A stretch of 8,734 nt of DNA, from NCBI GenBank assembly GCA_013416795.1, contig RQSC01001053.1, positions 37,352 through 46,085 on the forward strand, written 5' to 3'. The stretch is from Prasinococcaceae sp. CCMP 1430 (taxonomy: Eukaryota > Plantae > Prasinodermophyta). The translations under genes were made by a program, and so were the position numbers. The notes under the pieces were generated by a model. That model was not told the DNA's origin and ran no database searches. It saw only the letters and a list, made by a program, of their open reading frames with translations. This document shows, piece by piece, positions 71 through 8,734 of the stretch (within the stretch, counting starts at the first letter, position 1; each line of letters opens with the position of its first letter).

Positions 71-3000
71 TTAGATCAGGGGGTAACGACCCTCAATTGA
101 GCCTGACTTTCTCGTGACCACACGCGAAGTACCAGCGGTGTTTGCCCTCGCACCGGAGTCGGGCAGACTAGACACGGCCCGCTGGATGGGTTGAGAACCC
201 ACAGAGGCCCAATACCGACGCACCATATCTCGGGCATTTACCAGGTCGGCTTCTGGCTCCCAAGAATTATGTTCCGGACCATAGCCAGTCCACTGCACCA
301 AGTACTCGGTTTTTGGGCGAGCTCGAGAACCGACTTTGCGGTGACTAAGCACCTTCTCGACCTCGAATTCCTCGTCCCCAACAAGGAATCTAGTCAAAGG
401 TGGCGGTCCCGAAGCCTCACCATAAAACGGCTTCAACTGGGACACGTGGAACACGTCGTGGATTCGTGAACCCACAGGAAGTTCCAACTCGTAAGCCACT
501 TTACCGATAGGTCGCACTACCTTGTACGGACCCATCCATCTAGGCATCAACTTAACGCCTCGTTGTCCCACACGGGAGCGATAATTTCTGGTGTCCAACA
601 GTACCCGCTGTCCTGGTTGTAACACCAGGGGTCGCCGGTGTCGATCGGTGGCAGATTTCACACGACCCTGGATACGTTGGTACCGAAGTCGTGCCTCATC
701 ACGTGGCAACGACCTCTCCTCCTCACCCTCGGGGGCTGGCAAAGCCAGTGGTGCGTCTCCTCCCCGCACTGGTGAAGGGGTGGGTAGTCGCTCTAACGCA
801 GACTGACGATCCTCGGCAGCGCGCAAGTGAGCTCGAGCGTCATGAATGGCGGTCGAGTAGCGACTGACCCAACGGGTAGCGGCAGGCACACGACTCAACC
901 GTGTGGCACCAATCGCCAGATCCATTGGATTCCGGGGTTGGTGACTGTATAGCATCTCGAAGGGTGACAGACCCGTAGCTTGCACCCATGCGCTGTTGAT
1001 CGCAAACTCTGCCGTGTCTAAGTAGAGGTCCCAGTCATTGCGATCTGCATTTACAAAATGCCGCAACATGTCTTCAAGGACTCGATTCATGCGCTCGGTC
1101 TGCCCATCCGTCTGTGGATGAAAGGCGGTAGACATGGCTAGTTTCGTACCAGCCGTAGCGCACACTTCGCCCCAGAACGCACTGGTAAAGCGTGGGTCTC
1201 TGTCAGAGACAATCGAGCCAGGGAAACCGTGCAAGCGCACGATCTCATGCATGAAGACCTTAGCGAAGCTTATCGCGTCAATTGTTTTCGTCGTGGCGAC
1301 CAAGTGAACCATCTTGGTCAACCGATCCACGAAGACAATGATAGCATCATGCTTTAACTTGGTCACCGGCAGATCAGTGATCAAGTCCATGGATATATCT
1401 GTCCATGGCTTCTCTGGGATGGGAAGCGGCTGTAGCAACCCTGGCGGCCTTCGATTCGCGCTCTTATTGAACTGGCAGTCTGGGCACTGCCGTACGAACC
1501 GCTCGACATCCTTTGTCAGGCCTTCCCAGTGGAAGAATCTTTGAACGGCTTTCACCGTTCGGTTAATGCCAAGGTGTCCACTGTACGGAGTTGAATGCAG
1601 CTCCTCCAGAATCTGCTTCCGTAACTTGGTGACATCAGGAATCACCATGCGGTCATCCTTGAACCAAAGGCCGTCTCGGAAAGAGAACCCTTCCGTCTGC
1701 AACAAGTCGGCCTGCCCGAACTTCGGGTCTAGTGCATACCCTAGCCTGACACCCTGACGTAGCTGGAGGACATCAGGATCCGGGTTCATCGGATAGTGCA
1801 CGAAGTGGGAACCGCCCACCCCAGTTTTGCCAAGTCCCTCTGGTTCAGTCGGATCAGGGTTGGCCGACCCTTCACCTCCTGTCGCGCCTCCGCCCCTCAA
1901 GTAGAGGCCGGCCAGGGAGACAACACTCTGGCCAGGCTTCACCCGGTTACCCTCAACTGGGAACCGGCTCAGCGGATCAGCCACGTTCATCCGCCCTGGG
2001 AGGTACTCCCAACGGAAATTGAAGCTGTGGAGGAACTCAGACCAGCGAGCCTGGCGCCTCGACAAGCGCGGCTGGGTCGAGAAGAACACGTTGGGGTTAT
2101 GGTCCGTCACAACCGTGGTCGGACCAATATCGTTCTCCAAATAGCAACGCCAGATTCGGAAGGCATGCACCACAGCCAGGAGCTCCTTCTCGGACGTGCT
2201 ATAGTTCAGCTCAGCGGGCTGAAGCTTACGACTCTCGTAGGCAACGGGTTTGCCATCTTGTAAGAGCACTGCTCCTACGGCATAATCCGAAGCGTCGCTG
2301 ATCACCGTGAATGGCTTGTCCCAGTCAGGGAGAGCCAGCACTGGTGGCGAGATCAACAACCGTTTCAACTCTTGAAACGCGTGCTCCTCTCTGTCCGACC
2401 AGACCCAAGGTCGAGTCTTGGACGTGAGAGCCATAAGAGGAGAAGCGACTCCTGAAAACCCCTGAATAAACTTCCGAAACTGGTTGGCCAAACCGAGGAA
2501 GCTCTGAACGTCTCGCACGTTCTGAGGAGTCGGCCATTCGGAGACTGCCTGGACCTTGGCCGGGTCCACACGAACGCCTTCTCCATCAACCACATAGCCA
2601 AGATACTTCAATCGGCCGAGATTGAAGTGACACTTTTTCATCTTGGCGTACAGCTTGTGATCTCGCAATTTAGCGAGCACATAGCGTAAATGTCTTTCGT
2701 GCTCTTCCGGGGTTCGACTGTAAATCAGGATATCATCCAGATAAATCAGTACGAACTCGCCAATAGCGTCTCGGAAGACATCATTCATCAGCCGTTGAAA
2801 CGTCGAGGGGGCGTTGGTCAAGCCGAAGGGCATTACCATGAACTCGTACAACCCAAACGGAGTTCGGAATGCCGTTTTCGGGACGTCCTCCTCTGAAATA
2901 CGGATCTGATGATAACCTTGCGCCAAGTCGAGTGCTGAGAACACACGAGCTCCACGGAGCTTGTCCAACAGGTCATCTATCCGGGGAAGCGGATAGCGGT

Positions 3001-4420
3001 TCTTGACCGTGAGCTTATTCACTGCTCGTAGGTCCACACAGAACCGTAGTGACCCGTCCGCCTTTTTGGCTAGCAAGACCGGCGAGCCAAAGGGCGAAGC
3101 ACTCGGACGTACCCAACCTTTTTCAAGGTAGTACGCTAATTGACGCTTGATCTCAGCGAGCTCAGGAGGTGAATACCGGTACATCGGCCTGAAAGGTGGT
3201 ACCGCTCCTGGCTCTAGAGGAATCACGTGATTCACGTCCCGCCAAGGTGGCAAGCCCGTGGGATTATCTTCAGGGAACACGTCCTTGAAATCCCGAAGGA
3301 CGGCTTGTAGCCGCTCACTTGGCAATAAGTTAGCGTTGTCGGTCGGCTCTGAGCTAGTCGATTCGTCCACCTCAACTGTGCGTAAGAGGACGACTGCTAG
3401 CTCGGTGCCTCGCTTGACCGAACGCTTCAGCTGCATAGCTGACAAAAGTCGGGGCTCGTGGGCTGAACTTACAGCCGGCCTTACGACTATGGCTAGCGCA
3501 GAGTATGTCTTGCTCGAAGACACAAATGAAAGTCGAGATGCAGAGTAGTCGACAACCGCTTGGTGGCGGGTCAACCACGCATCCCCCAGGATCATATCGT
3601 AGCTGGGGTTGAGGGTTACCACGTGGAACCGAACCGTTCCTGAGTAACCACCCAATCGAACCTTCAATTGAGTTGTTCCACACACGGGAACGCTCGTAGT
3701 CCCATCGGCTAACGTAACCGTTGAAGTGTTTTTACTAGAGTATTTGATGCCCGCTCGGCTACAAAAAACCGAACTGAGAAAATTGTCAGTGGCTGCGGTA
3801 TCCACCACCGCCCGGCAATTCGAGCCGGCCACCGAGGCATCAAACTGCATTGTTACGTGTGAACCATGGTTCACAGCCGATACACTAGGACTAGGCGGAT
3901 CATAGAAAACATGGCACCTGACGGGTGAAGCCACATTTTCGATCTCACCAGTGGATCTAAGGCGCATCACTGGGGCCCCTTTGTCTATTACATGCACCAA
4001 CTGCAATTTAGACAACGATCCATGCAACTTGCGGTATGCGGGAACAAAAATCAACGCCGACGTACAATCGGGTTGTGCACGTTTCTCCACATTATACAAT
4101 TGCCACACACGACTTGCATTACACGGCATTGTGAGATTCAACCAGCAAGCATGGCCCGCAAGCGAGGTTTGCACCAACTTGGCGTCAAAACCATTTACTG
4201 TACCACCCAAGGGCATACGAGTGCCACACACATCGAGCCAACCATCAAGGGGCAATTCTACACGCTGCATAAGTTCACTAAACGAACTAGCATCTAGTTC
4301 AAGTGCAGCTACAGGTGTGCCTAGCCCCGTACAAAAACTCTTACTCGTCTCTAAGCCACTTATATTTCCAACAAGAGAAGCCCCCGTTGGCCCGTCACTA
4401 ACGGGGCTCTCTAGTTTTCC
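71..4420 (-). CDS. pol: Pol polyprotein (MTase-like domain, aspartic protease, RT, RNase H, integrase, chromodomain), probably made as a Gag-Pol -1 frameshift fusion
   Basis: Open frame with stop at 71-73. The ORF-track start at 4642 is a TTG, and the residues before ~4420 are off-frame gag sequence. Motifs DTAA/ILG, YLDD, DASD/EKELLA/TDH, HHCC, D-D35-E, GPY and a chromodomain are present. Confidence 0.96.
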   Translation of the reverse strand, partial: GKLESPVSDGPTGASLVGNISGLETSKSFCTGLGTPVAALELDASSFSELMQRVELPLDGWLDVCGTRMPLGGTVNGFDAKLVQTSLAGHACWLNLTMPCNASRVWQLYNVEKRAQPDCTSALIFVPAYRKLHGSLSKLQLVHVIDKGAPVMRLRSTGEIENVASPVRCHVFYDPPSPSVSAVNHGSHVTMQFDASVAGSNCRAVVDTAATDNFLSSVFCSRAGIKYSSKNTSTVTLADGTTSVPVCGTTQLKVRLGGYSGTVRFHVVTLNPSYDMILGDAWLTRHQAVVDYSASRLSFVSSSKTYSALAIVVRPAVSSAHEPRLLSAMQLKRSVKRGTELAVVLLRTVEVDESTSSEPTDNANLLPSERLQAVLRDFKDVFPEDNPTGLPPWRDVNHVIPLEPGAVPPFRPMYRYSPPELAEIKRQLAYYLEKGWVRPSASPFGSPVLLAKKADGSLRFCVDLRAVNKLTVKNRYPLPRIDDLLDKLRGARVFSALDLAQGYHQIRISEEDVPKTAFRTPFGLYEFMVMPFGLTNAPSTFQRLMNDVFRDAIGEFVLIYLDDILIYSRTPEEHERHLRYVLAKLRDHKLYAKMKKCHFNLGRLKYLGYVVDGEGVRVDPAKVQAVSEWPTPQNVRDVQSFLGLANQFRKFIQGFSGVASPLMALTSKTRPWVWSDREEHAFQELKRLLISPPVLALPDWDKPFTVISDASDYAVGAVLLQDGKPVAYESRKLQPAELNYSTSEKELLAVVHAFRIWRCYLENDIGPTTVVTDHNPNVFFSTQPRLSRRQARWSEFLHSFNFRWEYLPGRMNVADPLSRFPVEGNRVKPGQSVVSLAGLYLRGGGATGGEGSANPDPTEPEGLGKTGVGGSHFVHYPMNPDPDVLQLRQGVRLGYALDPKFGQADLLQTEGFSFRDGLWFKDDRMVIPDVTKLRKQILEELHSTPYSGHLGINRTVKAVQRFFHWEGLTKDVERFVRQCPDCQFNKSANRRPPGLLQPLPIPEKPWTDISMDLITDLPVTKLKHDAIIVFVDRLTKMVHLVATTKTIDAISFAKVFMHEIVRLHGFPGSIVSDRDPRFTSAFWGEVCATAGTKLAMSTAFHPQTDGQTERMNRVLEDMLRHFVNADRNDWDLYLDTAEFAINSAWVQATGLSPFEMLYSHQPRNPMDLAIGATRLSRVPAATRWVSRYSTAIHDARAHLRAAEDRQSALERLPTPSPVRGGDAPLALPAPEGEEERSLPRDEARLRYQRIQGRVKSATDRHRRPLVLQPGQRVLLDTRNYRSRVGQRGVKLMPRWMGPYKVVRPIGKVAYELELPVGSRIHDVFHVSQLKPFYGEASGPPPLTRFLVGDEEFEVEKVLSHRKVGSRARPKTEYLVQWTGYGPEHNSWEPEADLVNARDMVRRYWASVGSQPIQRAVSSLPDSGARANTAGTSRVVTRKSGSIEGRYPLI
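209..367 (-). other. Chromodomain at the Pol C-terminus
   Basis: FEVEKVLSHR...EYLVQWTGYGPEHNSWEPEADL...VRRYW matches the chromodomain pattern (Y/F-E-V-E-x-I, YLVKW.GY, WEP). Confidence 0.93.
500..1680 (-). other. Integrase domain (HHCC zinc finger, DDE core, GPY/F)
   Basis: H-x6-H...C-x2-C at 1475-1597. D at 1385-1387 (SMDLI), D at 1202-1204 (SDRD), E at 1094-1096 (QTERMNR), with D-35-E spacing. WMGPYKV at 524-532. Confidence 0.95.
1964..2311 (-). other. RNase H domain
   Basis: FTVISDASDYAVGAVLLQ, YSTSEKELLAVV, VVTDH and NVADPLSR motifs typical of Ty3/Gypsy RNase H. Confidence 0.94.
2588..3190 (-). other. Reverse transcriptase core
   Basis: GWVRPSASPFGSP, LRFCVDLR, YPLPRIDDL, LDLAQGYHQI, KTAFRTP, MPFGLTNAPSTFQ, catalytic YLDD at 2732-2743, KYLGYVV. 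Confidence 0.97.
3518..3856 (-). other. Retropepsin-type aspartic protease
   Basis: RAVVDTAATDNF (catalytic Asp at 3800-3802), VTLADG flap, and YDMILGDAWL C-terminal motif. Boundaries are approximate. Confidence 0.88.
3893..4303 (-). other. Extra domain upstream of the protease resembling a degenerate Dam-like N6-adenine DNA methyltransferase
   Basis: L-x-L-D-x3-F-x2-L, WLDVCG, LAGHACWLNLTM (position of the W-x-NPPF motif), Y-x3-K-x3-P-x2-TSA-x3-VP, and VFYDPP. Recognised from memory of retroelement MTase domains, not by a search. Confidence 0.65.
4374..4420 (-). promoter_or_regulatory. Predicted -1 programmed ribosomal frameshift signal
   Basis: Heptamer G_GAA_AAC at 4420-4414 in the gag frame, immediately before the gag TAG. 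A stem CCCCGTT (4406-4400) / AACGGGG (4388-4382) starts 7 nt downstream. Pol is in the -1 frame. Confidence 0.8.
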
Positions 4421-5787
4421 GACTGTCTTGCCGTAGCTTGTGCGCCACCACGGGCTCCACCACGAAAGCCACGGCCTCCCCGGCCACCACGTCGACGACC
4501 TTGGAAGCTCACTCCATTCGACTGCACCCGTGCGGCCGCCTGCTCGGCGTTGACTTGCCGGTTGGCGTGGTCGGGCTGGAGACACTCGTTTCCAGTGTGC
4601 CCCGGCTTTCCGCACTCGAAACACAAGCGGTGGGTGAAGCAAAGCTGCCGCAGGGTGTCTGACCGTGGCTTCTTAGCCGGGTGAGACTTGGTGTCAGAGC
4701 GGGTTGCCTCGACAGTACCGGGTCGCTTGGTGCGACCACGGTTCTTGCCGGGACGGAAAACACCCCCCGACTTGGGAGGTGTGGGCACATGCCCATCACC
4801 CACTCCGCCTCCTGCTGGCGGGCCCCGCTGACGAGTTGGGTCATTCCGCTTCAACGGAAGTAACTCGTCATCCAGCCGGGCCAACGCATCCACCAATTTG
4901 GCCAAGCTCGAGACTTGCTCTGGAGAGAGGAGCTCGAGGGTCCGCAGTGGAGCCCAAAGGGCTTGACGCTGCGATTGCACAGCCTTACGGATGCGCAACT
5001 TGAGGGAGCCCTCGGACTGTTTCTCCTCGGCCCGTGTGATGCGGTTACTTGCCTCAAGGAGCCGTTGCACCGCCGTGGCCAAGCGCTCGTCTGGCTTGAT
5101 GTGCCACCGGTCAATGGCGTCCATGGCACGGCGGTCCGGGTCACCCATCCCGTAAGTGGCAACTAGCCACGTCTCCAAGTCAGCGAGCTTCGCTGTACGG
5201 GGGGCACCGCGCTCTGCCTCCAAGGCATCACGACGGTTGGACCAAGCCGCGTTCACCACCTCGCTGAGGCAGCGTTCGGCTGCCAACAGCTGTGTGTGTT
5301 CGGAAGCTGCCACTCCCGGCTCATCCAAAACGCCTAACTGACGTTTGAAGGTACTTATCCACCGACGCACATCGTCCGTGGGTAAGCCCTTGAACATGGG
5401 CACTTTGTCCGTGAGCTTGTACAGCTCTGGAGCAAAGATGACCCGTGGATTGAGCGGGATGGGACCACGTGGTCCCACGGTAGTGGTCGCTTCAAGCGGC
5501 ACTGCTACCGGTGGCCCGGTCGACATGACCGGTGCAGCACGCTCGGGGTGGGTACCTCCAGCCGCTCCCCGAAAGGAGAGGAGGTCCGCCTGGCACTCAG
5601 CGAGCACCTGCTCGGCCTGAGCGATCCCGAGCCTACTCCGGATGTCCGTGATGTACTCACGGACCATGGACGGCAAGTCCTCATCCGGGATGTGAAGGAG
5701 ATCTTCATCGTCTTCCTCCATGGGTTGATCGGCCTCCCTGGGTGCGGGGTTGTCGGTCGGGGTGTCGGCCTGCACGTTGCACGTCAT
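4411..5787 (-). CDS. gag: Gag ORF (capsid-like region, CCHC zinc knuckle, RGG tail); 4411-5769 is probably exon 2 of a spliced gag
   Basis: 458-aa ORF upstream of pol. P-x-F-x-G...W capsid N-terminal motif (PMFKG...DVRRWI), zinc knuckle CFECGKPGHTGNEC (C-x2-C-x4-H-x4-C), and a C-terminal RGG tract. Confidence 0.92.
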   Translation of the reverse strand: MTCNVQADTPTDNPAPREADQPMEEDDEDLLHIPDEDLPSMVREYITDIRSRLGIAQAEQVLAECQADLLSFRGAAGGTHPERAAPVMSTGPPVAVPLEATTTVGPRGPIPLNPRVIFAPELYKLTDKVPMFKGLPTDDVRRWISTFKRQLGVLDEPGVAASEHTQLLAAERCLSEVVNAAWSNRRDALEAERGAPRTAKLADLETWLVATYGMGDPDRRAMDAIDRWHIKPDERLATAVQRLLEASNRITRAEEKQSEGSLKLRIRKAVQSQRQALWAPLRTLELLSPEQVSSLAKLVDALARLDDELLPLKRNDPTRQRGPPAGGGVGDGHVPTPPKSGGVFRPGKNRGRTKRPGTVEATRSDTKSHPAKKPRSDTLRQLCFTHRLCFECGKPGHTGNECLQPDHANRQVNAEQAAARVQSNGVSFQGRRRGGRGGRGFRGGARGGAQATARQSEN

Positions 5788-5846
5788 TCATGAGTGCCCG
5801 TGCCAAGAAGGCATTAGAATACAGTGGAAAACATGATGGTTGGTCA

Positions 5847-5938
5847 AGCAGCCGGTCAGCCTGTGAGCCGGTCGGCCTGTCAGCCGGTCAGCCTATCACC
5901 CTGTCAGCCGGTCAGCCTGTCTGCCCGACAGGCTGACC
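5847..5938. repeat. Array of ~10 degenerate 8-mers (GTCAGCCG/GTCAGCCT) ending in a 12-bp inverted copy
   Basis: In-register units from 5847: agcagccg, gtcagcct, gtgagccg, gtcggcct, gtcagccg, gtcagcct, atcaccct, gtcagccg, gtcagcct, gtctgccc, then gacaggctgacc. Confidence 0.9.
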
Positions 5939-5965
5939 ATAGGCCAGCAAGAAAACATGCATAAC

Positions 5966-5993
5966 TTTCTCAATTCAACTCCGAATTGAGAAA
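5966..5993. repeat. Perfect 11-bp inverted repeat with a 6-nt loop
   Basis: tttctcaattc (5966-5976), aactcc, gaattgagaaa (5983-5993). Confidence 0.9.
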
Positions 5994-6885
5994 TTCAAAG
6001 TGCGTTAGAAACGGCCTGGACCTGGGCTATCTGTTGCACTAGACAGCGGCGTCTGATTCCAAGCACAGTGGTACCAAAACAGGCCTGATTGAACCAGTGT
6101 CACAGAACAGCACATGGCTGCCACAACGAGCAACCCGAGACAAAACAGCGAGTCTCACGCACAGCTCAAAGGCCCAAAACGTACGTGACTCAGAGAAAAG
6201 GTAACACAGCAAGGGCTTTACCGTGTGATCAAACGGGAGCTCACGAAAATAATGGAATACGAAGATATTAGACAAGACGTGCTTGAGAGTACACGGGTAA
6301 AAAGTGGGTCCACAGACCAGCCCACACACCCGGTATGATACAAAACGGCGGCGCTTGCCATTCTCAACTCCGTCATCCAAACAACGTGGGACCAAATTCA
6401 AATAAAAGCCTTGGAATGACTTAAGGAAAGGCCCAAAAGGTTCCCTCAGAAACATCACCAAAATGCGGTGAGCTCCATGCATCTAAGCAAGGGTAACCGG
6501 ATCAAAAAATTGGGTATCAGGAAAACCCGAACACCCAGCAAGCTTTAACGACGTCCAGCCGCCAGGAAAGAGCAGAAAATTGAGATCCGTTTGAAGCTAC
6601 TAGAAGCTTCATAAATACCCTCAGGAACACAGCAATATCTCCAAGAAATTACTCCAGAGCGACGAGCACAACTGTCCGTTCAAACTCAGATCTCAGAGAT
6701 TGCAAAAAACAGTCGCAGCCATATAACCCGAAACTCGACCAAACTTCCGGGCCAATTCTATCAAAGGTAGAGGCCACCCGAGAAGCTATCAAGACGTGGT
6801 CAAGATGAGCAATGTCCAAGGTAAACAAATACCAAAGACAAGGCTGAGAATCATTCGGATGGGTCCGGTAGCACGGCTGTCTCAA

Positions 6886-6954
6886 ATCAGCCTGTCAGCC
6901 TGTCACCCTGTTTGACAGGCTGACAGACAGGACTGACAGACAGGCCTGACAGGC
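6886..6954. repeat. Second GTCAGCCT/TGACAG cluster with forward then inverted copies; 14-bp hairpin
   Basis: atcagcct gtcagcct gtcaccct, then tgacaggctgacag acaggactgacag acaggcctgacaggc. ctgtcagcctgtca (6892-6905) is the reverse complement of 6913-6926. Confidence 0.9.
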
Positions 6955-7281
6955 AGCAACTTCAAACTCATGCTGCTGCTAAACATCTCATACCGACACA
7001 TGGTTATGAAAAGCAGAGAGTGGGCTTTCCCACTAGCCAACCCAAAAGGAATTCCATCCGACCAATTCAACGCCATGGGTATAAACGTTCACAGGGGTCA
7101 ATCGGGTAGAACAAGATTGGCCGAAAACACCCCACAAAATGGCGCAACGTGCTGAGTGAGCACAAAGAAAGAGAAATGGATCCCAAACGGGGAACTTCCC
7201 ATTCAGGAACCCAGCTATCCTTGGCTAAAATCTTGGGACCTGGATCGGTCCATACCGCACACACCAAGCCAATATACACAC

Positions 7282-7537
7282 GGCTAGTTTCTTGTAAAAC
7301 AGCCCTGTAAAACTGTAACTGGCAAGCTGGTTTGTACCAGCAGAGCGGCCATCAATACTCAGCAACCCCTGCATCATTCAAGGTGCAAATACAGCATGTT
7401 CCAGCCACCAGGCTTTACTCTTGGATGGGACAAACAGCAGTGTAAAACTCTGCCTATTCATGATGGGACCCCGGTCTCAAACTGGCCGGGTGTTCCAAGC
7501 ACTGAAACCTGAGCACCAGTTTTACAAGCAACTAGGC
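7282..7537. repeat. 256-nt segment bounded by a 19-bp imperfect inverted repeat
   Basis: ggctagtttcttgtaaaac (7282-7300) versus the reverse complement of 7519-7537, gcctagttgcttgtaaaac: 17/19 identical. Confidence 0.75.
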
Positions 7538-7839
7538 TGAAACACTTAATGGAACATAGCTCACACGAAACCGCACCAAAATAAGATTGGTTTGGCTCTA
7601 ACGAGGGGCCTTTACATCAGCTTTCAAACAAGCTTAAGGTTCCCTGGAGCAAACACACACCACGGCAACACGGCCTGCTGCTGTCCGAACAAATTTTCTG
7701 AGATTTTGCAACTGTAAAATTGGCTGTAACTCAGAAATTTGGGCCACTTTGCCCGCATGGTTTGAACAGCAAACAAGACAGCGAACGGAAAGAGGGAAGA
7801 GAAGGGAGAGAGAGTATGGCACAGCGCCATCTTTCTTAC

Positions 7840-8070
7840 CCCAGCCGGGTCGTTCCCGGCTGGCTGCTCCTCGGGTTCTTCATGCGGCTCCCGGGAAGCT
7901 CCAGCCCGAGCTGGGTCATCTTGGTGCTCCTCCCCCGTTGCCGGTGGGTTCGTCTCCATGGGTGACGCCCGTGAGTCCGTCTCCATGGGTGTTACCCGTG
8001 AGGTTGAAGGTGCAGCTCCCCCCGTCGCCTTGGCTGCCACCCCAACTCCAGCCCGTCGTCCACCCGCCAT
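7840..8070 (-). CDS. gag: Predicted gag exon 1: 77-aa low-complexity (A/G/P/E-rich) N-terminus
   Basis: The ATG at 8070 (ccATGGcg) is the first sense-strand ATG after the PBS. The frame stays open to the GTAAG donor, and the composition matches the start of exon 2 (ADTPTDNPAPREADQPMEEDDED). Confidence 0.7.
7951..8004. repeat. Two-copy 27-nt tandem duplication inside predicted exon 1
   Basis: cgtctccatgggtgacgcccgtgagtc / cgtctccatgggtgttacccgtgaggt (22/27 identical), encoding SRVTPMETD / SRASPMETN. Confidence 0.85.
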
Positions 8071-8236
8071 GGAAACTCGAACAAAATGGGGCTGGAGGTA
8101 GAGATGGTTCCCAGGAAGATGGGGACGGTGTTGCTGGTCTTCTTGGGACTTCAAACTCTGTCACGGCCTCAAAGACAGCCGGACAGCCCAAAGAACTCTG
8201 ATTTCACAAGAATGGAAGGCCCTCCCCGGACCTTGC

Positions 8237-8248
8237 GCTCCGATACCA
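8237..8248 (-). other. Primer binding site complementary to the 3' end of initiator tRNA-Met (plant/green-algal type)
   Basis: Minus strand TGGTATCGGAGC, 2 nt after the LTR CA. It matches the canonical TGGTATCAGAGC at 11/12, the difference allowing a G-U pair. Confidence 0.92.
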
Positions 8249-8250
8249 AA

Positions 8251-8570
8251 TGTTAGAAGGGGGACCGGGAGCCCAAGGAACCTCCTTCTTGGACCCGGCC
8301 CGTCCTCGAATACTATCACACAATACACAAGACAAGAGTGGGCATGGAGGCCACCACGGCCTCACGCTGACTCCCCCATGCCCGGGGTTGTTTCTGGATT
8401 TCCAAGTCCCCCCTCGATTGGTCCTCGAGTGGGCCTTATCCAGTCGATGCCTCTAGGTACTCCCGTATAGCTATACGTCGACCTAGCCCCACCTAGGGAG
8501 TAGACATCTAGGAGGGATCCACGGGTGTGAGCGGCCCGTGGTCCTCCTTTTGGGAGGCGGCTATGTAACA
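8251..8570 (-). repeat. Complete 320-bp LTR: 5' LTR of this copy and 3' LTR of the adjacent copy
   Basis: TGTTA...TAACA terminal inverted repeats. PBS abuts one side and PPT the other. The last 18 nt match window positions 1-18. Confidence 0.93.
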
Positions 8571-8583
8571 TTCCTCCCCCTCC
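8571..8583 (-). other. Polypurine tract of the adjacent copy
   Basis: GGAGGGGGAGGAA on the minus strand, identical to 19-31. Confidence 0.92.
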
Positions 8584-8627
8584 ATAAGGGTCTCGTCCTC
8601 GAGACGTAAGAATGGGGATACCCCAAC

Positions 8628-8734
8628 TCAGGGTGTAACGACCCTCAATTGAGCCTGACTTCTCGTGACCACACGCGAAGTACCAGCGGTGTTTGCCCTC
8701 GCACCGGAGTCGGACAGACTAGACACGGCCCGCT
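8628..8734 (-). CDS. pol: Partial Pol C-terminus of the adjacent copy (...RAVSSLSDSGARANTAGTSRVVTRSQAQLRVVTP*)
   Basis: Homologous to 71-183. A 1-nt indel changes the last residues and the frame stops at TGA (8630-8628). Frame assumed from copy 1. Confidence 0.7.
   Translation of the reverse strand, partial: RAVSSLSDSGARANTAGTSRVVTRSQAQLRVVTP

Follow-up and report, generated by a model that had tools for sequence, protein, structure and literature searches.

The window analysed here, an 8,734-nucleotide (nt) stretch of contig RQSC01001053.1 from Prasinococcaceae sp. CCMP 1430 (assembly GCA_013416795.1, forward-strand positions 37,352 to 46,085), contains on its minus strand an apparently intact Ty3/Gypsy chromovirus consisting of gag, a -1 frameshift and a Pol polyprotein in which an additional domain is found ahead of the protease. 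Descent of this domain (pol residues 112-253, window 3884-4309, minus strand) from the phage-type N6-adenine DNA methyltransferase family PF05869 (Dam) is well supported, the relationship being traced transitively through a family of related chromovirus domains. The domain is probably catalytically dead and kept as a pseudo-methyltransferase with a non-catalytic role in chromovirus Pol, a reading that follows from its predicted fold, from near-invariant residues of the family's own and from purifying selection in relatives. Dam-carrying chromoviruses are already known; what is new is a motif-less lineage, invisible to profile searches, in which the domain is under selection in relatives.

The domain was first noticed as a 137-residue segment (window 3893-4303, minus strand), the stop-free translation of which agrees with the initial annotation, and all of the sequence blocks by which it was then recognized could be mapped on the translation where they had been placed, namely LELDASSFSEL (pol 114-124, window 4271-4303), WLDVCG (pol 135-140, window 4223-4240), LAGHACWLNLTM (pol 161-172), NLTM (window 4127-4138), YNVEKRAQPDCTSALIFVP (pol 183-201) and VFYDPP (pol 245-250, window 3893-3910), each on the minus strand. 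The unusually long interval between the frameshift and the protease is likewise real, although at ∼186 extra residues, counted from pol residue 77 up to the protease (Pfam match from 263-268, catalytic DTA at 281), it slightly exceeds the 170 residues originally given. An alternating helix and strand character had also been suggested for the segment, and an AlphaFold model contains helices at residues 7-16, 41-45 and 62-78 together with seven strands.

A HMMER search of the whole library (1.84 billion representatives) returned two meaningful matches, P0121 (E 2.8e-5) and P0122 (E 4e-4), both of which are fragments of the protease(-RT-RNase H) type (RT, reverse transcriptase) with the matching stretch located directly before the protease. 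A third match, P0123, was rejected as spurious, being a repeat protein that matched in four partial stretches and that has no retroelement domain. For a local profile search, 120 Pol relatives were fetched by their RT region, and a first profile built from the window, P0121 and P0122 detected the same stretch in 33 of them. The profile of a family alignment of 32 sequences, window included (A1), raises the number of carriers to 45 among 122 related chromovirus Pols, the domain ending 10-15 residues before the protease in every carrier. When the family hidden Markov model was built without the window, the window segment still scored 59.0 bits (E 2.5e-20 with a single target), compared with a maximum of 6.6 bits among 1000 shuffles; pol 154-252 is the sole part of the window domain that is significantly aligned in this comparison.

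The family is characterized by blocks of its own. A hallmark block of the form Y183-x3-K187-x3-P191-x2-T-S195-A196 (window 4055-4096, minus strand) falls on positions that are not conserved in Dam, and an F-Y-D-P-P hallmark (3893-3907, minus strand) ends the last strand, 12 residues before the protease domain, its Asp (D248) being present in 30 of the 32 aligned members. Each of Y183, K187, P191, S195, A196 and D248 is found in 29-31 of the 32, and the window keeps all six. The C-terminal Y-Y-D-P-P was considered as a relocated catalytic D-P-P-(Y/F) motif and rejected, as it is followed by no conserved aromatic residue and ends the last strand beside the protease.

In an RT tree of 67 rows all domain carriers fall into one clade (Shimodaira-Hasegawa-like approximate likelihood ratio test, SH-aLRT, 99), which also holds chromoviruses of Haematococcus and Closterium, and the profile search detected no trace of the domain in land-plant elements or in other named algal elements. 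All domain carriers are metagenome or Logan contigs, with a green alga as the probable host. The contig that encodes P0122, one of the two closest relatives of the window domain, is 12,985 nt long (L007) and contains a degraded copy split into several open reading frames (ORFs), behind which lies another, distinct Gypsy element.

Four lines of evidence, different in method but all working through A1, support Dam ancestry of the family. Six phage dam genes, confirmed as PF05869 with 97-206 bits, were fetched as references, and in a profile-profile comparison with hhalign the 32-sequence family matched them over 90 columns with a probability of 97.5% (E 5.9e-12); the value was 97.7% without the window and 96.9% without the three Pfam-matching members, and reversed or column-shuffled controls remained at or below 1.1%. 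Among the 32 members scanned singly, three match PF05869 itself, including P0113 (27.6 bits, E 2.8e-6) and P0089 (23.5 bits); the curated Pfam cut-off of 28.1 bits is exceeded by L017 (35.0 bits, E 1.5e-8), a relative that was found later and is outside the 32-row alignment. Three of the 32 also match the PHROG family phrog_111, 'DNA methyltransferase' (best E 1.7e-8). A tblastn search of phage genomes with P0113 gave 409 weak matches, almost all of them to annotated dam genes. Finally, AlphaFold, with the family alignment as input, predicts the window segment to be a compact alpha/beta domain (predicted local distance difference test, pLDDT, 85.4; predicted template-modelling score 0.80), for which the top Foldseek matches in BFVD are phage and giant-virus DNA N-6-adenine-methyltransferases (probability 0.97-1.0, template-modelling score 0.5-0.62, E 1.6e-3 to 0.1), with PCIF1-like adenine methyltransferases ranking next. 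Matches in the PDB are weak (best E 0.03) and are mostly to class I methyltransferases (CcrM, M.BceJIV, PCIF1, and TehB).

The phage-Dam-like ancestry proposed in the initial annotation thus receives support from the family profile, the member matches, the structure and tblastn, rather than from the window's sequence alone, and several findings weigh against it. A HMMER check of the segment against PF05869 gave no match at E ≤ 10, nor was there any at this threshold in Pfam, NCBIfam or PHROGs as a whole; a search of PDB sequences with the segment gave no match, and tblastn of the segment against phage genomes yielded chance matches only. Nothing was found in word-index protein searches (Pol 95-262 against full-length candidates, and a 183-residue piece), and a profile search of PDB sequences produced a single chance match to stathmin (E 10). 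In hhalign the window together with its two nearest relatives reaches 72% and the window alone nothing, and an AlphaFold model from the single sequence is uninformative (pLDDT 34). The Foldseek comparison, although headed in BFVD by N6-adenine methyltransferases, has marginal E-values (1.6e-3 at best in BFVD, 0.03 in the PDB), and there is no PF05869 structure among the PDB matches. The assignment of the window domain, as far as sequence goes, is entirely transitive through the family. The missing direct match and the marginal structural E-values are what would be expected if the likeness to Dam were spurious and the segment were an unrelated small alpha/beta domain or an extended protease pro-region. 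This explanation appears very improbable given the strength of the hhalign match and its clean negative controls, the score of L017 above Pfam's curated Dam threshold, and the convergence of the PHROG, tblastn and BFVD matches on N6-adenine methyltransferases.

Little of the Dam active site can be found in the window domain. The hhalign alignment places window W167-L-N169-L-(T)-M-P-C on Dam W-L-N-P-P-Y-S, such that the Asn is kept and both prolines and the aromatic residue are lost, in agreement with the earlier proposal that the catalytic N-P-P-Y/F has been replaced. The degenerate motif IV, N169-L170-T171-M172-P173 (window 4124-4138, minus strand), is aligned to Dam N-P-(insertion)-P-Y and is preceded by the conserved W167-L168. 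WLDVCG, which had been assigned to S-adenosylmethionine-binding motif I, does not occupy this place: the invariant Asp of Dam 'F-x-L-D-x-A-A' aligns with D133 (4244-4246, minus strand) in the sequence P-L-D, three residues before WLDVCG, and no G-x-G is present. Most of the 'F-x-L-D-x-A-A ... N-A-L-C' block is lost in the window; apart from N169, the only residues kept among those invariant in the six Dams are D133 and the Pro of 'L-x-P', the Leu of which is replaced by Ile, and the N-terminal D-x-W-x-T-P and the G-R-x-x-F motif are outside the aligned region.

The loss of the motif is real but is not peculiar to one copy, being common to all 32 aligned members. At the tetrad (D/N)-P-P-(Y/F/W) the 32 members have 30 different tetrads, none of which is canonical, the nearest being HPPY, NAPF, and NPPA. 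A survey of relatives for an intact NPPF accordingly found none among the 32 aligned members, and one beyond them, in L019. Near-canonical relatives, comprising this NPPF, the NAPF of L017, L018 and P0113, and the HPPY of P0089, suggest descent from an NPP(Y/F) ancestor. The metagenome scan that yielded L017-L019 searched with a pattern derived from motif IV itself, and its matches are therefore unusable for unbiased motif frequencies. L019 (positions 3-329), the sole family member found with NPPF, is interrupted by an in-frame stop within N-A-L-C and truncated where its contig ends.

Judged by its motifs, with the residues that hold and deprotonate the flipped adenine lost, the domain has most likely ceased to methylate adenine by the canonical mechanism. 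It is conceivable that it is still an active methyltransferase with a non-canonical loop, perhaps acting on RNA:DNA hybrids, RNA or protein. Retention of the predicted fold, purifying selection in relatives and the presence in the window of N169 and D133, which align with the catalytic Asn and the Dam Asp, respectively, are consistent with continued activity, and it has been suggested that the Dam domains (DAMs) of transposable elements (TEs) may need an RNA:DNA substrate (10.64898/2026.05.21.726589). However, all four tetrad positions vary freely, with the 30 tetrads among 32 members, which is unlike a catalytic loop, just 11 of the 32 members retain the Asp of the 'LD' block, and the residues that are conserved are located elsewhere, so that an active enzyme appears improbable.

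Whether a domain of this kind is maintained cannot be judged from its open frame alone, since a stop or frameshift at this position also kills the protease, RT and integrase. Ratios of non-synonymous to synonymous substitution rates (dN/dS) were calculated per segment by the Nei-Gojobori method, with bootstrap intervals, for four pairs of relatives, three of which were usable for the domain. For the Dam-like segment dN/dS was 0.12 (95% interval 0.06-0.19) in P0053/P0143, 0.31 (0.18-0.52) in P0068/P0069 and 0.14 (0.07-0.22) in P0099/P0104, where synonymous sites are near saturation; they are saturated in the fourth pair. Values in the same pairs were 0.11-0.21 for the protease and 0.05-0.08 for RT. 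The three pairs carry degenerate tetrads (NVQM, DSCS/DPFL, and DLPV/DVPT), and it is therefore the motif-less version of the domain that is clearly under purifying selection in these relatives, about as strong as that on the protease.

In the lineage of the window the domain could instead be a functionless relic, a decayed, once-active Dam that survives as no more than an in-frame link from the frameshift site to the protease. It has lost the catalytic tetrad and most Dam-invariant residues, and the N-terminal third (LELDASSFSEL, WLDVCG) cannot be significantly aligned even to its own family, being more decayed than in relatives and placed by the multiple alignment and the structure model without statistical sequence support. 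Amino acid divergence of the domain is 2-3 times faster than that of RT and similar to that of the protease and of the protease-RT linker. Third-position GC content over the domain and its leader (3893-4414) is 0.38-0.48, the lowest in Pol (0.55-0.71 elsewhere in pol; gag, 0.67), which could indicate weaker constraint or a different origin. Furthermore, no close copies of the window's element were found in viral and metagenome contigs, so the dN/dS values stem from relatives. Set against these points are the dN/dS of 0.12-0.31 in three pairs with equally degenerate tetrads, the occurrence of the domain at a constant position in 45 divergent elements, the 59-bit score of the window against a profile built without it and its retention of all six near-invariant residues, and a model that is confident and compact (pLDDT 85). 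A relic is hence considered unlikely, and retention as a pseudo-methyltransferase remains the preferred reading.

The position of the domain, in frame with Pol and immediately N-terminal to the protease, suggests how such a pseudo-methyltransferase might be deployed. Its synthesis would be confined to Gag-Pol, with the domain in the N-terminal part of Pol; it would be packaged into the particle with Gag-Pol, and would probably be released by the adjacent protease. As a pseudo-enzyme it would most likely act as a binding or scaffold module, the target of which may be the element's own nucleic acid or a host partner such as the host writer of N6-methyladenine (6mA). The roles suggested in the initial annotation, binding of cDNA, RNA or S-adenosylmethionine or shielding of the cDNA from host methylation readers, are likewise conjectural.

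The remainder of the element is organized as follows, with all features on the minus strand. The gag ORF (5787-4414, with a TAG stop at 4413-4411) encodes 458 amino acids including a CCHC zinc knuckle near the C-terminus. The pol open frame (71-4642, coding 4642-74) comprises 1523 codons, 76 of which overlap gag, and by its coordinates is in the -1 frame relative to gag. A candidate -1 frameshift heptamer, GGAAAAC (4420-4414), was read directly before the gag stop, and a predicted RNA stem-loop (4323-4408), a possible frameshift stimulator, begins 5 nt past it; the 90 nt past the heptamer fold with -32.3 kcal/mol (z -2.75 versus 200 shuffles). The -1 offset, the heptamer at the gag stop and the better-than-shuffle fold make a -1 frameshift at this point the likely entry to Pol; slippage at GGAAAAC would be read in the pol frame as GGA AAA CTA. 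Post-frameshift Pol would thus extend over pol 77-1523 (4414-74) and start with a leader (pol 77-113, 4304-4414) that is unconserved in the family alignment and probably disordered, the single-sequence model, the only one to cover it, having a pLDDT below 50 at every residue.

Downstream of the Dam-derived domain, Pfam matches identify the aspartic protease (pol 263-375, 3518-3856; catalytic D281 at 3800-3802), RT (pol 526-684, 2591-3067), RNase H (pol 748-874, 2021-2401), the integrase H2C2 zinc domain and DDE core (pol 1006-1061 and 1083-1176, 1115-1627), and the integrase C-terminal SH3 domain followed by a chromodomain (pol 1344-1406 and 1426-1479, 206-613). The order in Pol is therefore Dam-derived domain, protease, RT, RNase H, integrase and chromodomain. 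The chromodomain (PF00385, E 1.1e-14) at the integrase C-terminus identifies the element as a chromovirus, and its RT groups with those of chromoviruses. Protease and DDE integrase are present, and none of Pol's Pfam matches is to a tyrosine recombinase family. Searches of the window for tRNAs and Rfam families gave no match.

Direct repeats are found at both window ends (1-183 and 8553-8734), with 91% identity over the first 109 nt and 99% over the next 75; they take in the 37 terminal codons of pol with the stop codon and a further 70 nt. The window thus corresponds to one 8552-nt unit plus the overlap, with a single stretch containing long terminal repeat (LTR) sequence (∼5790-8552) between the end of pol and gag. 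This layout might reflect a one-LTR circle, an array of tandem copies or a collapse during assembly, and a relative (L011) is permuted in the same way, with pol preceding gag. Just upstream of gag, 9.6 copies of an 8-nt unit, CAGCCTGT, occupy window 5849-5925, an array with a short palindrome (GTCAGCCTGTC...GACAGGCTGAC) at its end. A 13-nt repeat related to this unit, GACAGGCTGACA, is present in 3.4 copies ∼1 kb further upstream (6914-6956). The non-coding region at 6001-7000, upstream of gag, has a plus-strand AT skew of 0.32-0.35 and a lower GC content (0.48-0.50), and the sense strand of the element is therefore T-rich there. Within the presumed LTR or untranslated region is a 176-residue ORF of low complexity, rich in Pro, Ala and Glu (7624-8154, minus strand), which contains a 27-nt tandem repeat in 2.3 copies (7940-8002).

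Phage and prophage Dam proteins of PF05869, such as the Klebsiella phage RaK2 dam product and Pantoea phage PSKM gp40, are homologous to the chromovirus family over a core of ∼90 columns. Common to both are a helix, 'x-L-D', W-L-N and a strand ending in L-V-P, and the predicted folds appear to be similar. Unlike phage Dam, the window domain lacks D-x-W-x-T-P, A-A, N-A-L-C, P-P-Y-S, the threonine of T-D-T-x-W-F, and G-R-x-x-F, whereas the blocks H-Y-x-x-C-K-x3-P-x2-T-S-A-C and Y-Y-D-P-P are the chromovirus family's own. A genuine Dam (PF05869, 52 bits) with NPPY and GRLTF was observed in a metagenome contig (L027, 2661-2951), where it has the string G-Q-H-V-W-L-N-P-P in common with the chromovirus family; a 604-residue ORF upstream of it has no Pfam match, and the contig could belong to a phage, a bacterium or a DIRS-like element.

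The occurrence of Dam domains in chromoviruses, about which the initial annotation was in doubt, is now documented. A bioRxiv preprint of May 2026 describes the first Dam-type domains in non-DIRS LTR retrotransposons (DAM-LTRs), in several lineages that include a 'Chlorophyta DAM-chromovirus-like clade', derives these domains from DIRS elements, and shows that the domain is prokaryotic and that its capture by LTR retrotransposons was repeated (10.64898/2026.05.21.726589). No other papers on such a domain in chromoviruses were found in a literature search. The window element resembles the DAM-LTRs in having a Ty3/Gypsy LTR Pol with a chromodomain and a PF05869-type domain in the polyprotein, together with protease, RT, RNase H and DDE integrase. 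According to the preprint, nearly all DAMs retain the Asn-Pro-Pro triplet and the catalytic pocket is conserved (10.64898/2026.05.21.726589); by comparison with this description, the window domain has no Pfam match at E ≤ 10 and none of its 32 aligned relatives has a canonical tetrad. The preprint's screen used hmmsearch at E ≤ 1e-5 (10.64898/2026.05.21.726589), a value that the window does not reach and that among the 32 members only P0113 (2.8e-6) passes, as does the later L017 (1.5e-8). A screen of this kind would overlook the window and, probably, the majority of the family, since none of the carriers among the 120 Pol relatives has a precomputed PF05869 match and no more than three of the 32 scanned members match at all, and then weakly. 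Screens based on profile thresholds thus undercount Dam-carrying chromoviruses: the domain is in 45 of 122 Pols, and L017 alone among the segments scanned is above the Pfam threshold.

When expressed in dam-deficient Escherichia coli, TE DAMs added no 6mA, those bearing the motif included, and the domain was proposed either to methylate replication intermediates directly or to recruit the host AMT1 (10.64898/2026.05.21.726589). The preprint does not decide between 6mA writing by the domain and recruitment of a host writer (10.64898/2026.05.21.726589), and the window element and its relatives constitute a natural experiment on this question. Loss of the tetrad in every aligned member, combined with purifying selection in relatives, favours a non-catalytic contribution, and residues Y183, K187, S195, A196, and D248 can be singled out for testing. 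Should the domain indeed serve as a scaffold, the benefit of Dam capture by LTR elements would be independent of catalysis by the element itself.

DIRS retrotransposons carry the same prokaryotic Dam family inside a retroelement polyprotein and are the likely donor according to the preprint (10.64898/2026.05.21.726589). They differ in encoding a tyrosine recombinase, in having no protease and in having the DAM beside RT and RNase H; the window element combines protease, DDE integrase and chromodomain, with the domain located ahead of the protease.

In position, the domain is comparable to the dUTPase of betaretroviruses, as both are accessory domains of nucleotide or nucleic-acid enzymes at the gag-pro junction, although they are unrelated in fold and chemistry. 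The betaretroviral dUTPase is encoded between nucleocapsid and protease, expressed by frameshifting, packaged with Gag-Pro-Pol, and is catalytically active.

For the loss of the motif, an analogy is provided by METTL14, which has the motif EPPL, and Tetrahymena MTA9, N6-adenine methyltransferase folds that are without the motif and are kept as nucleic-acid-binding or scaffold subunits. Like the chromovirus domain, they have lost (D/N)PP(W/Y/F) yet are conserved. A broader proposal, which is rather improbable, is that a large, Pfam-invisible chromovirus clade of green-alga type keeps its Dam pseudo-enzyme as a METTL14- or MTA9-like scaffold that would bind newly made cDNA and recruit the host 6mA writer AMT1, such that insertions would land in permissive chromatin. 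METTL14 and MTA9 are nevertheless cellular proteins of a different family, MT-A70, and are paired with an active paralogue, whereas the window domain belongs to a retroelement Pol.

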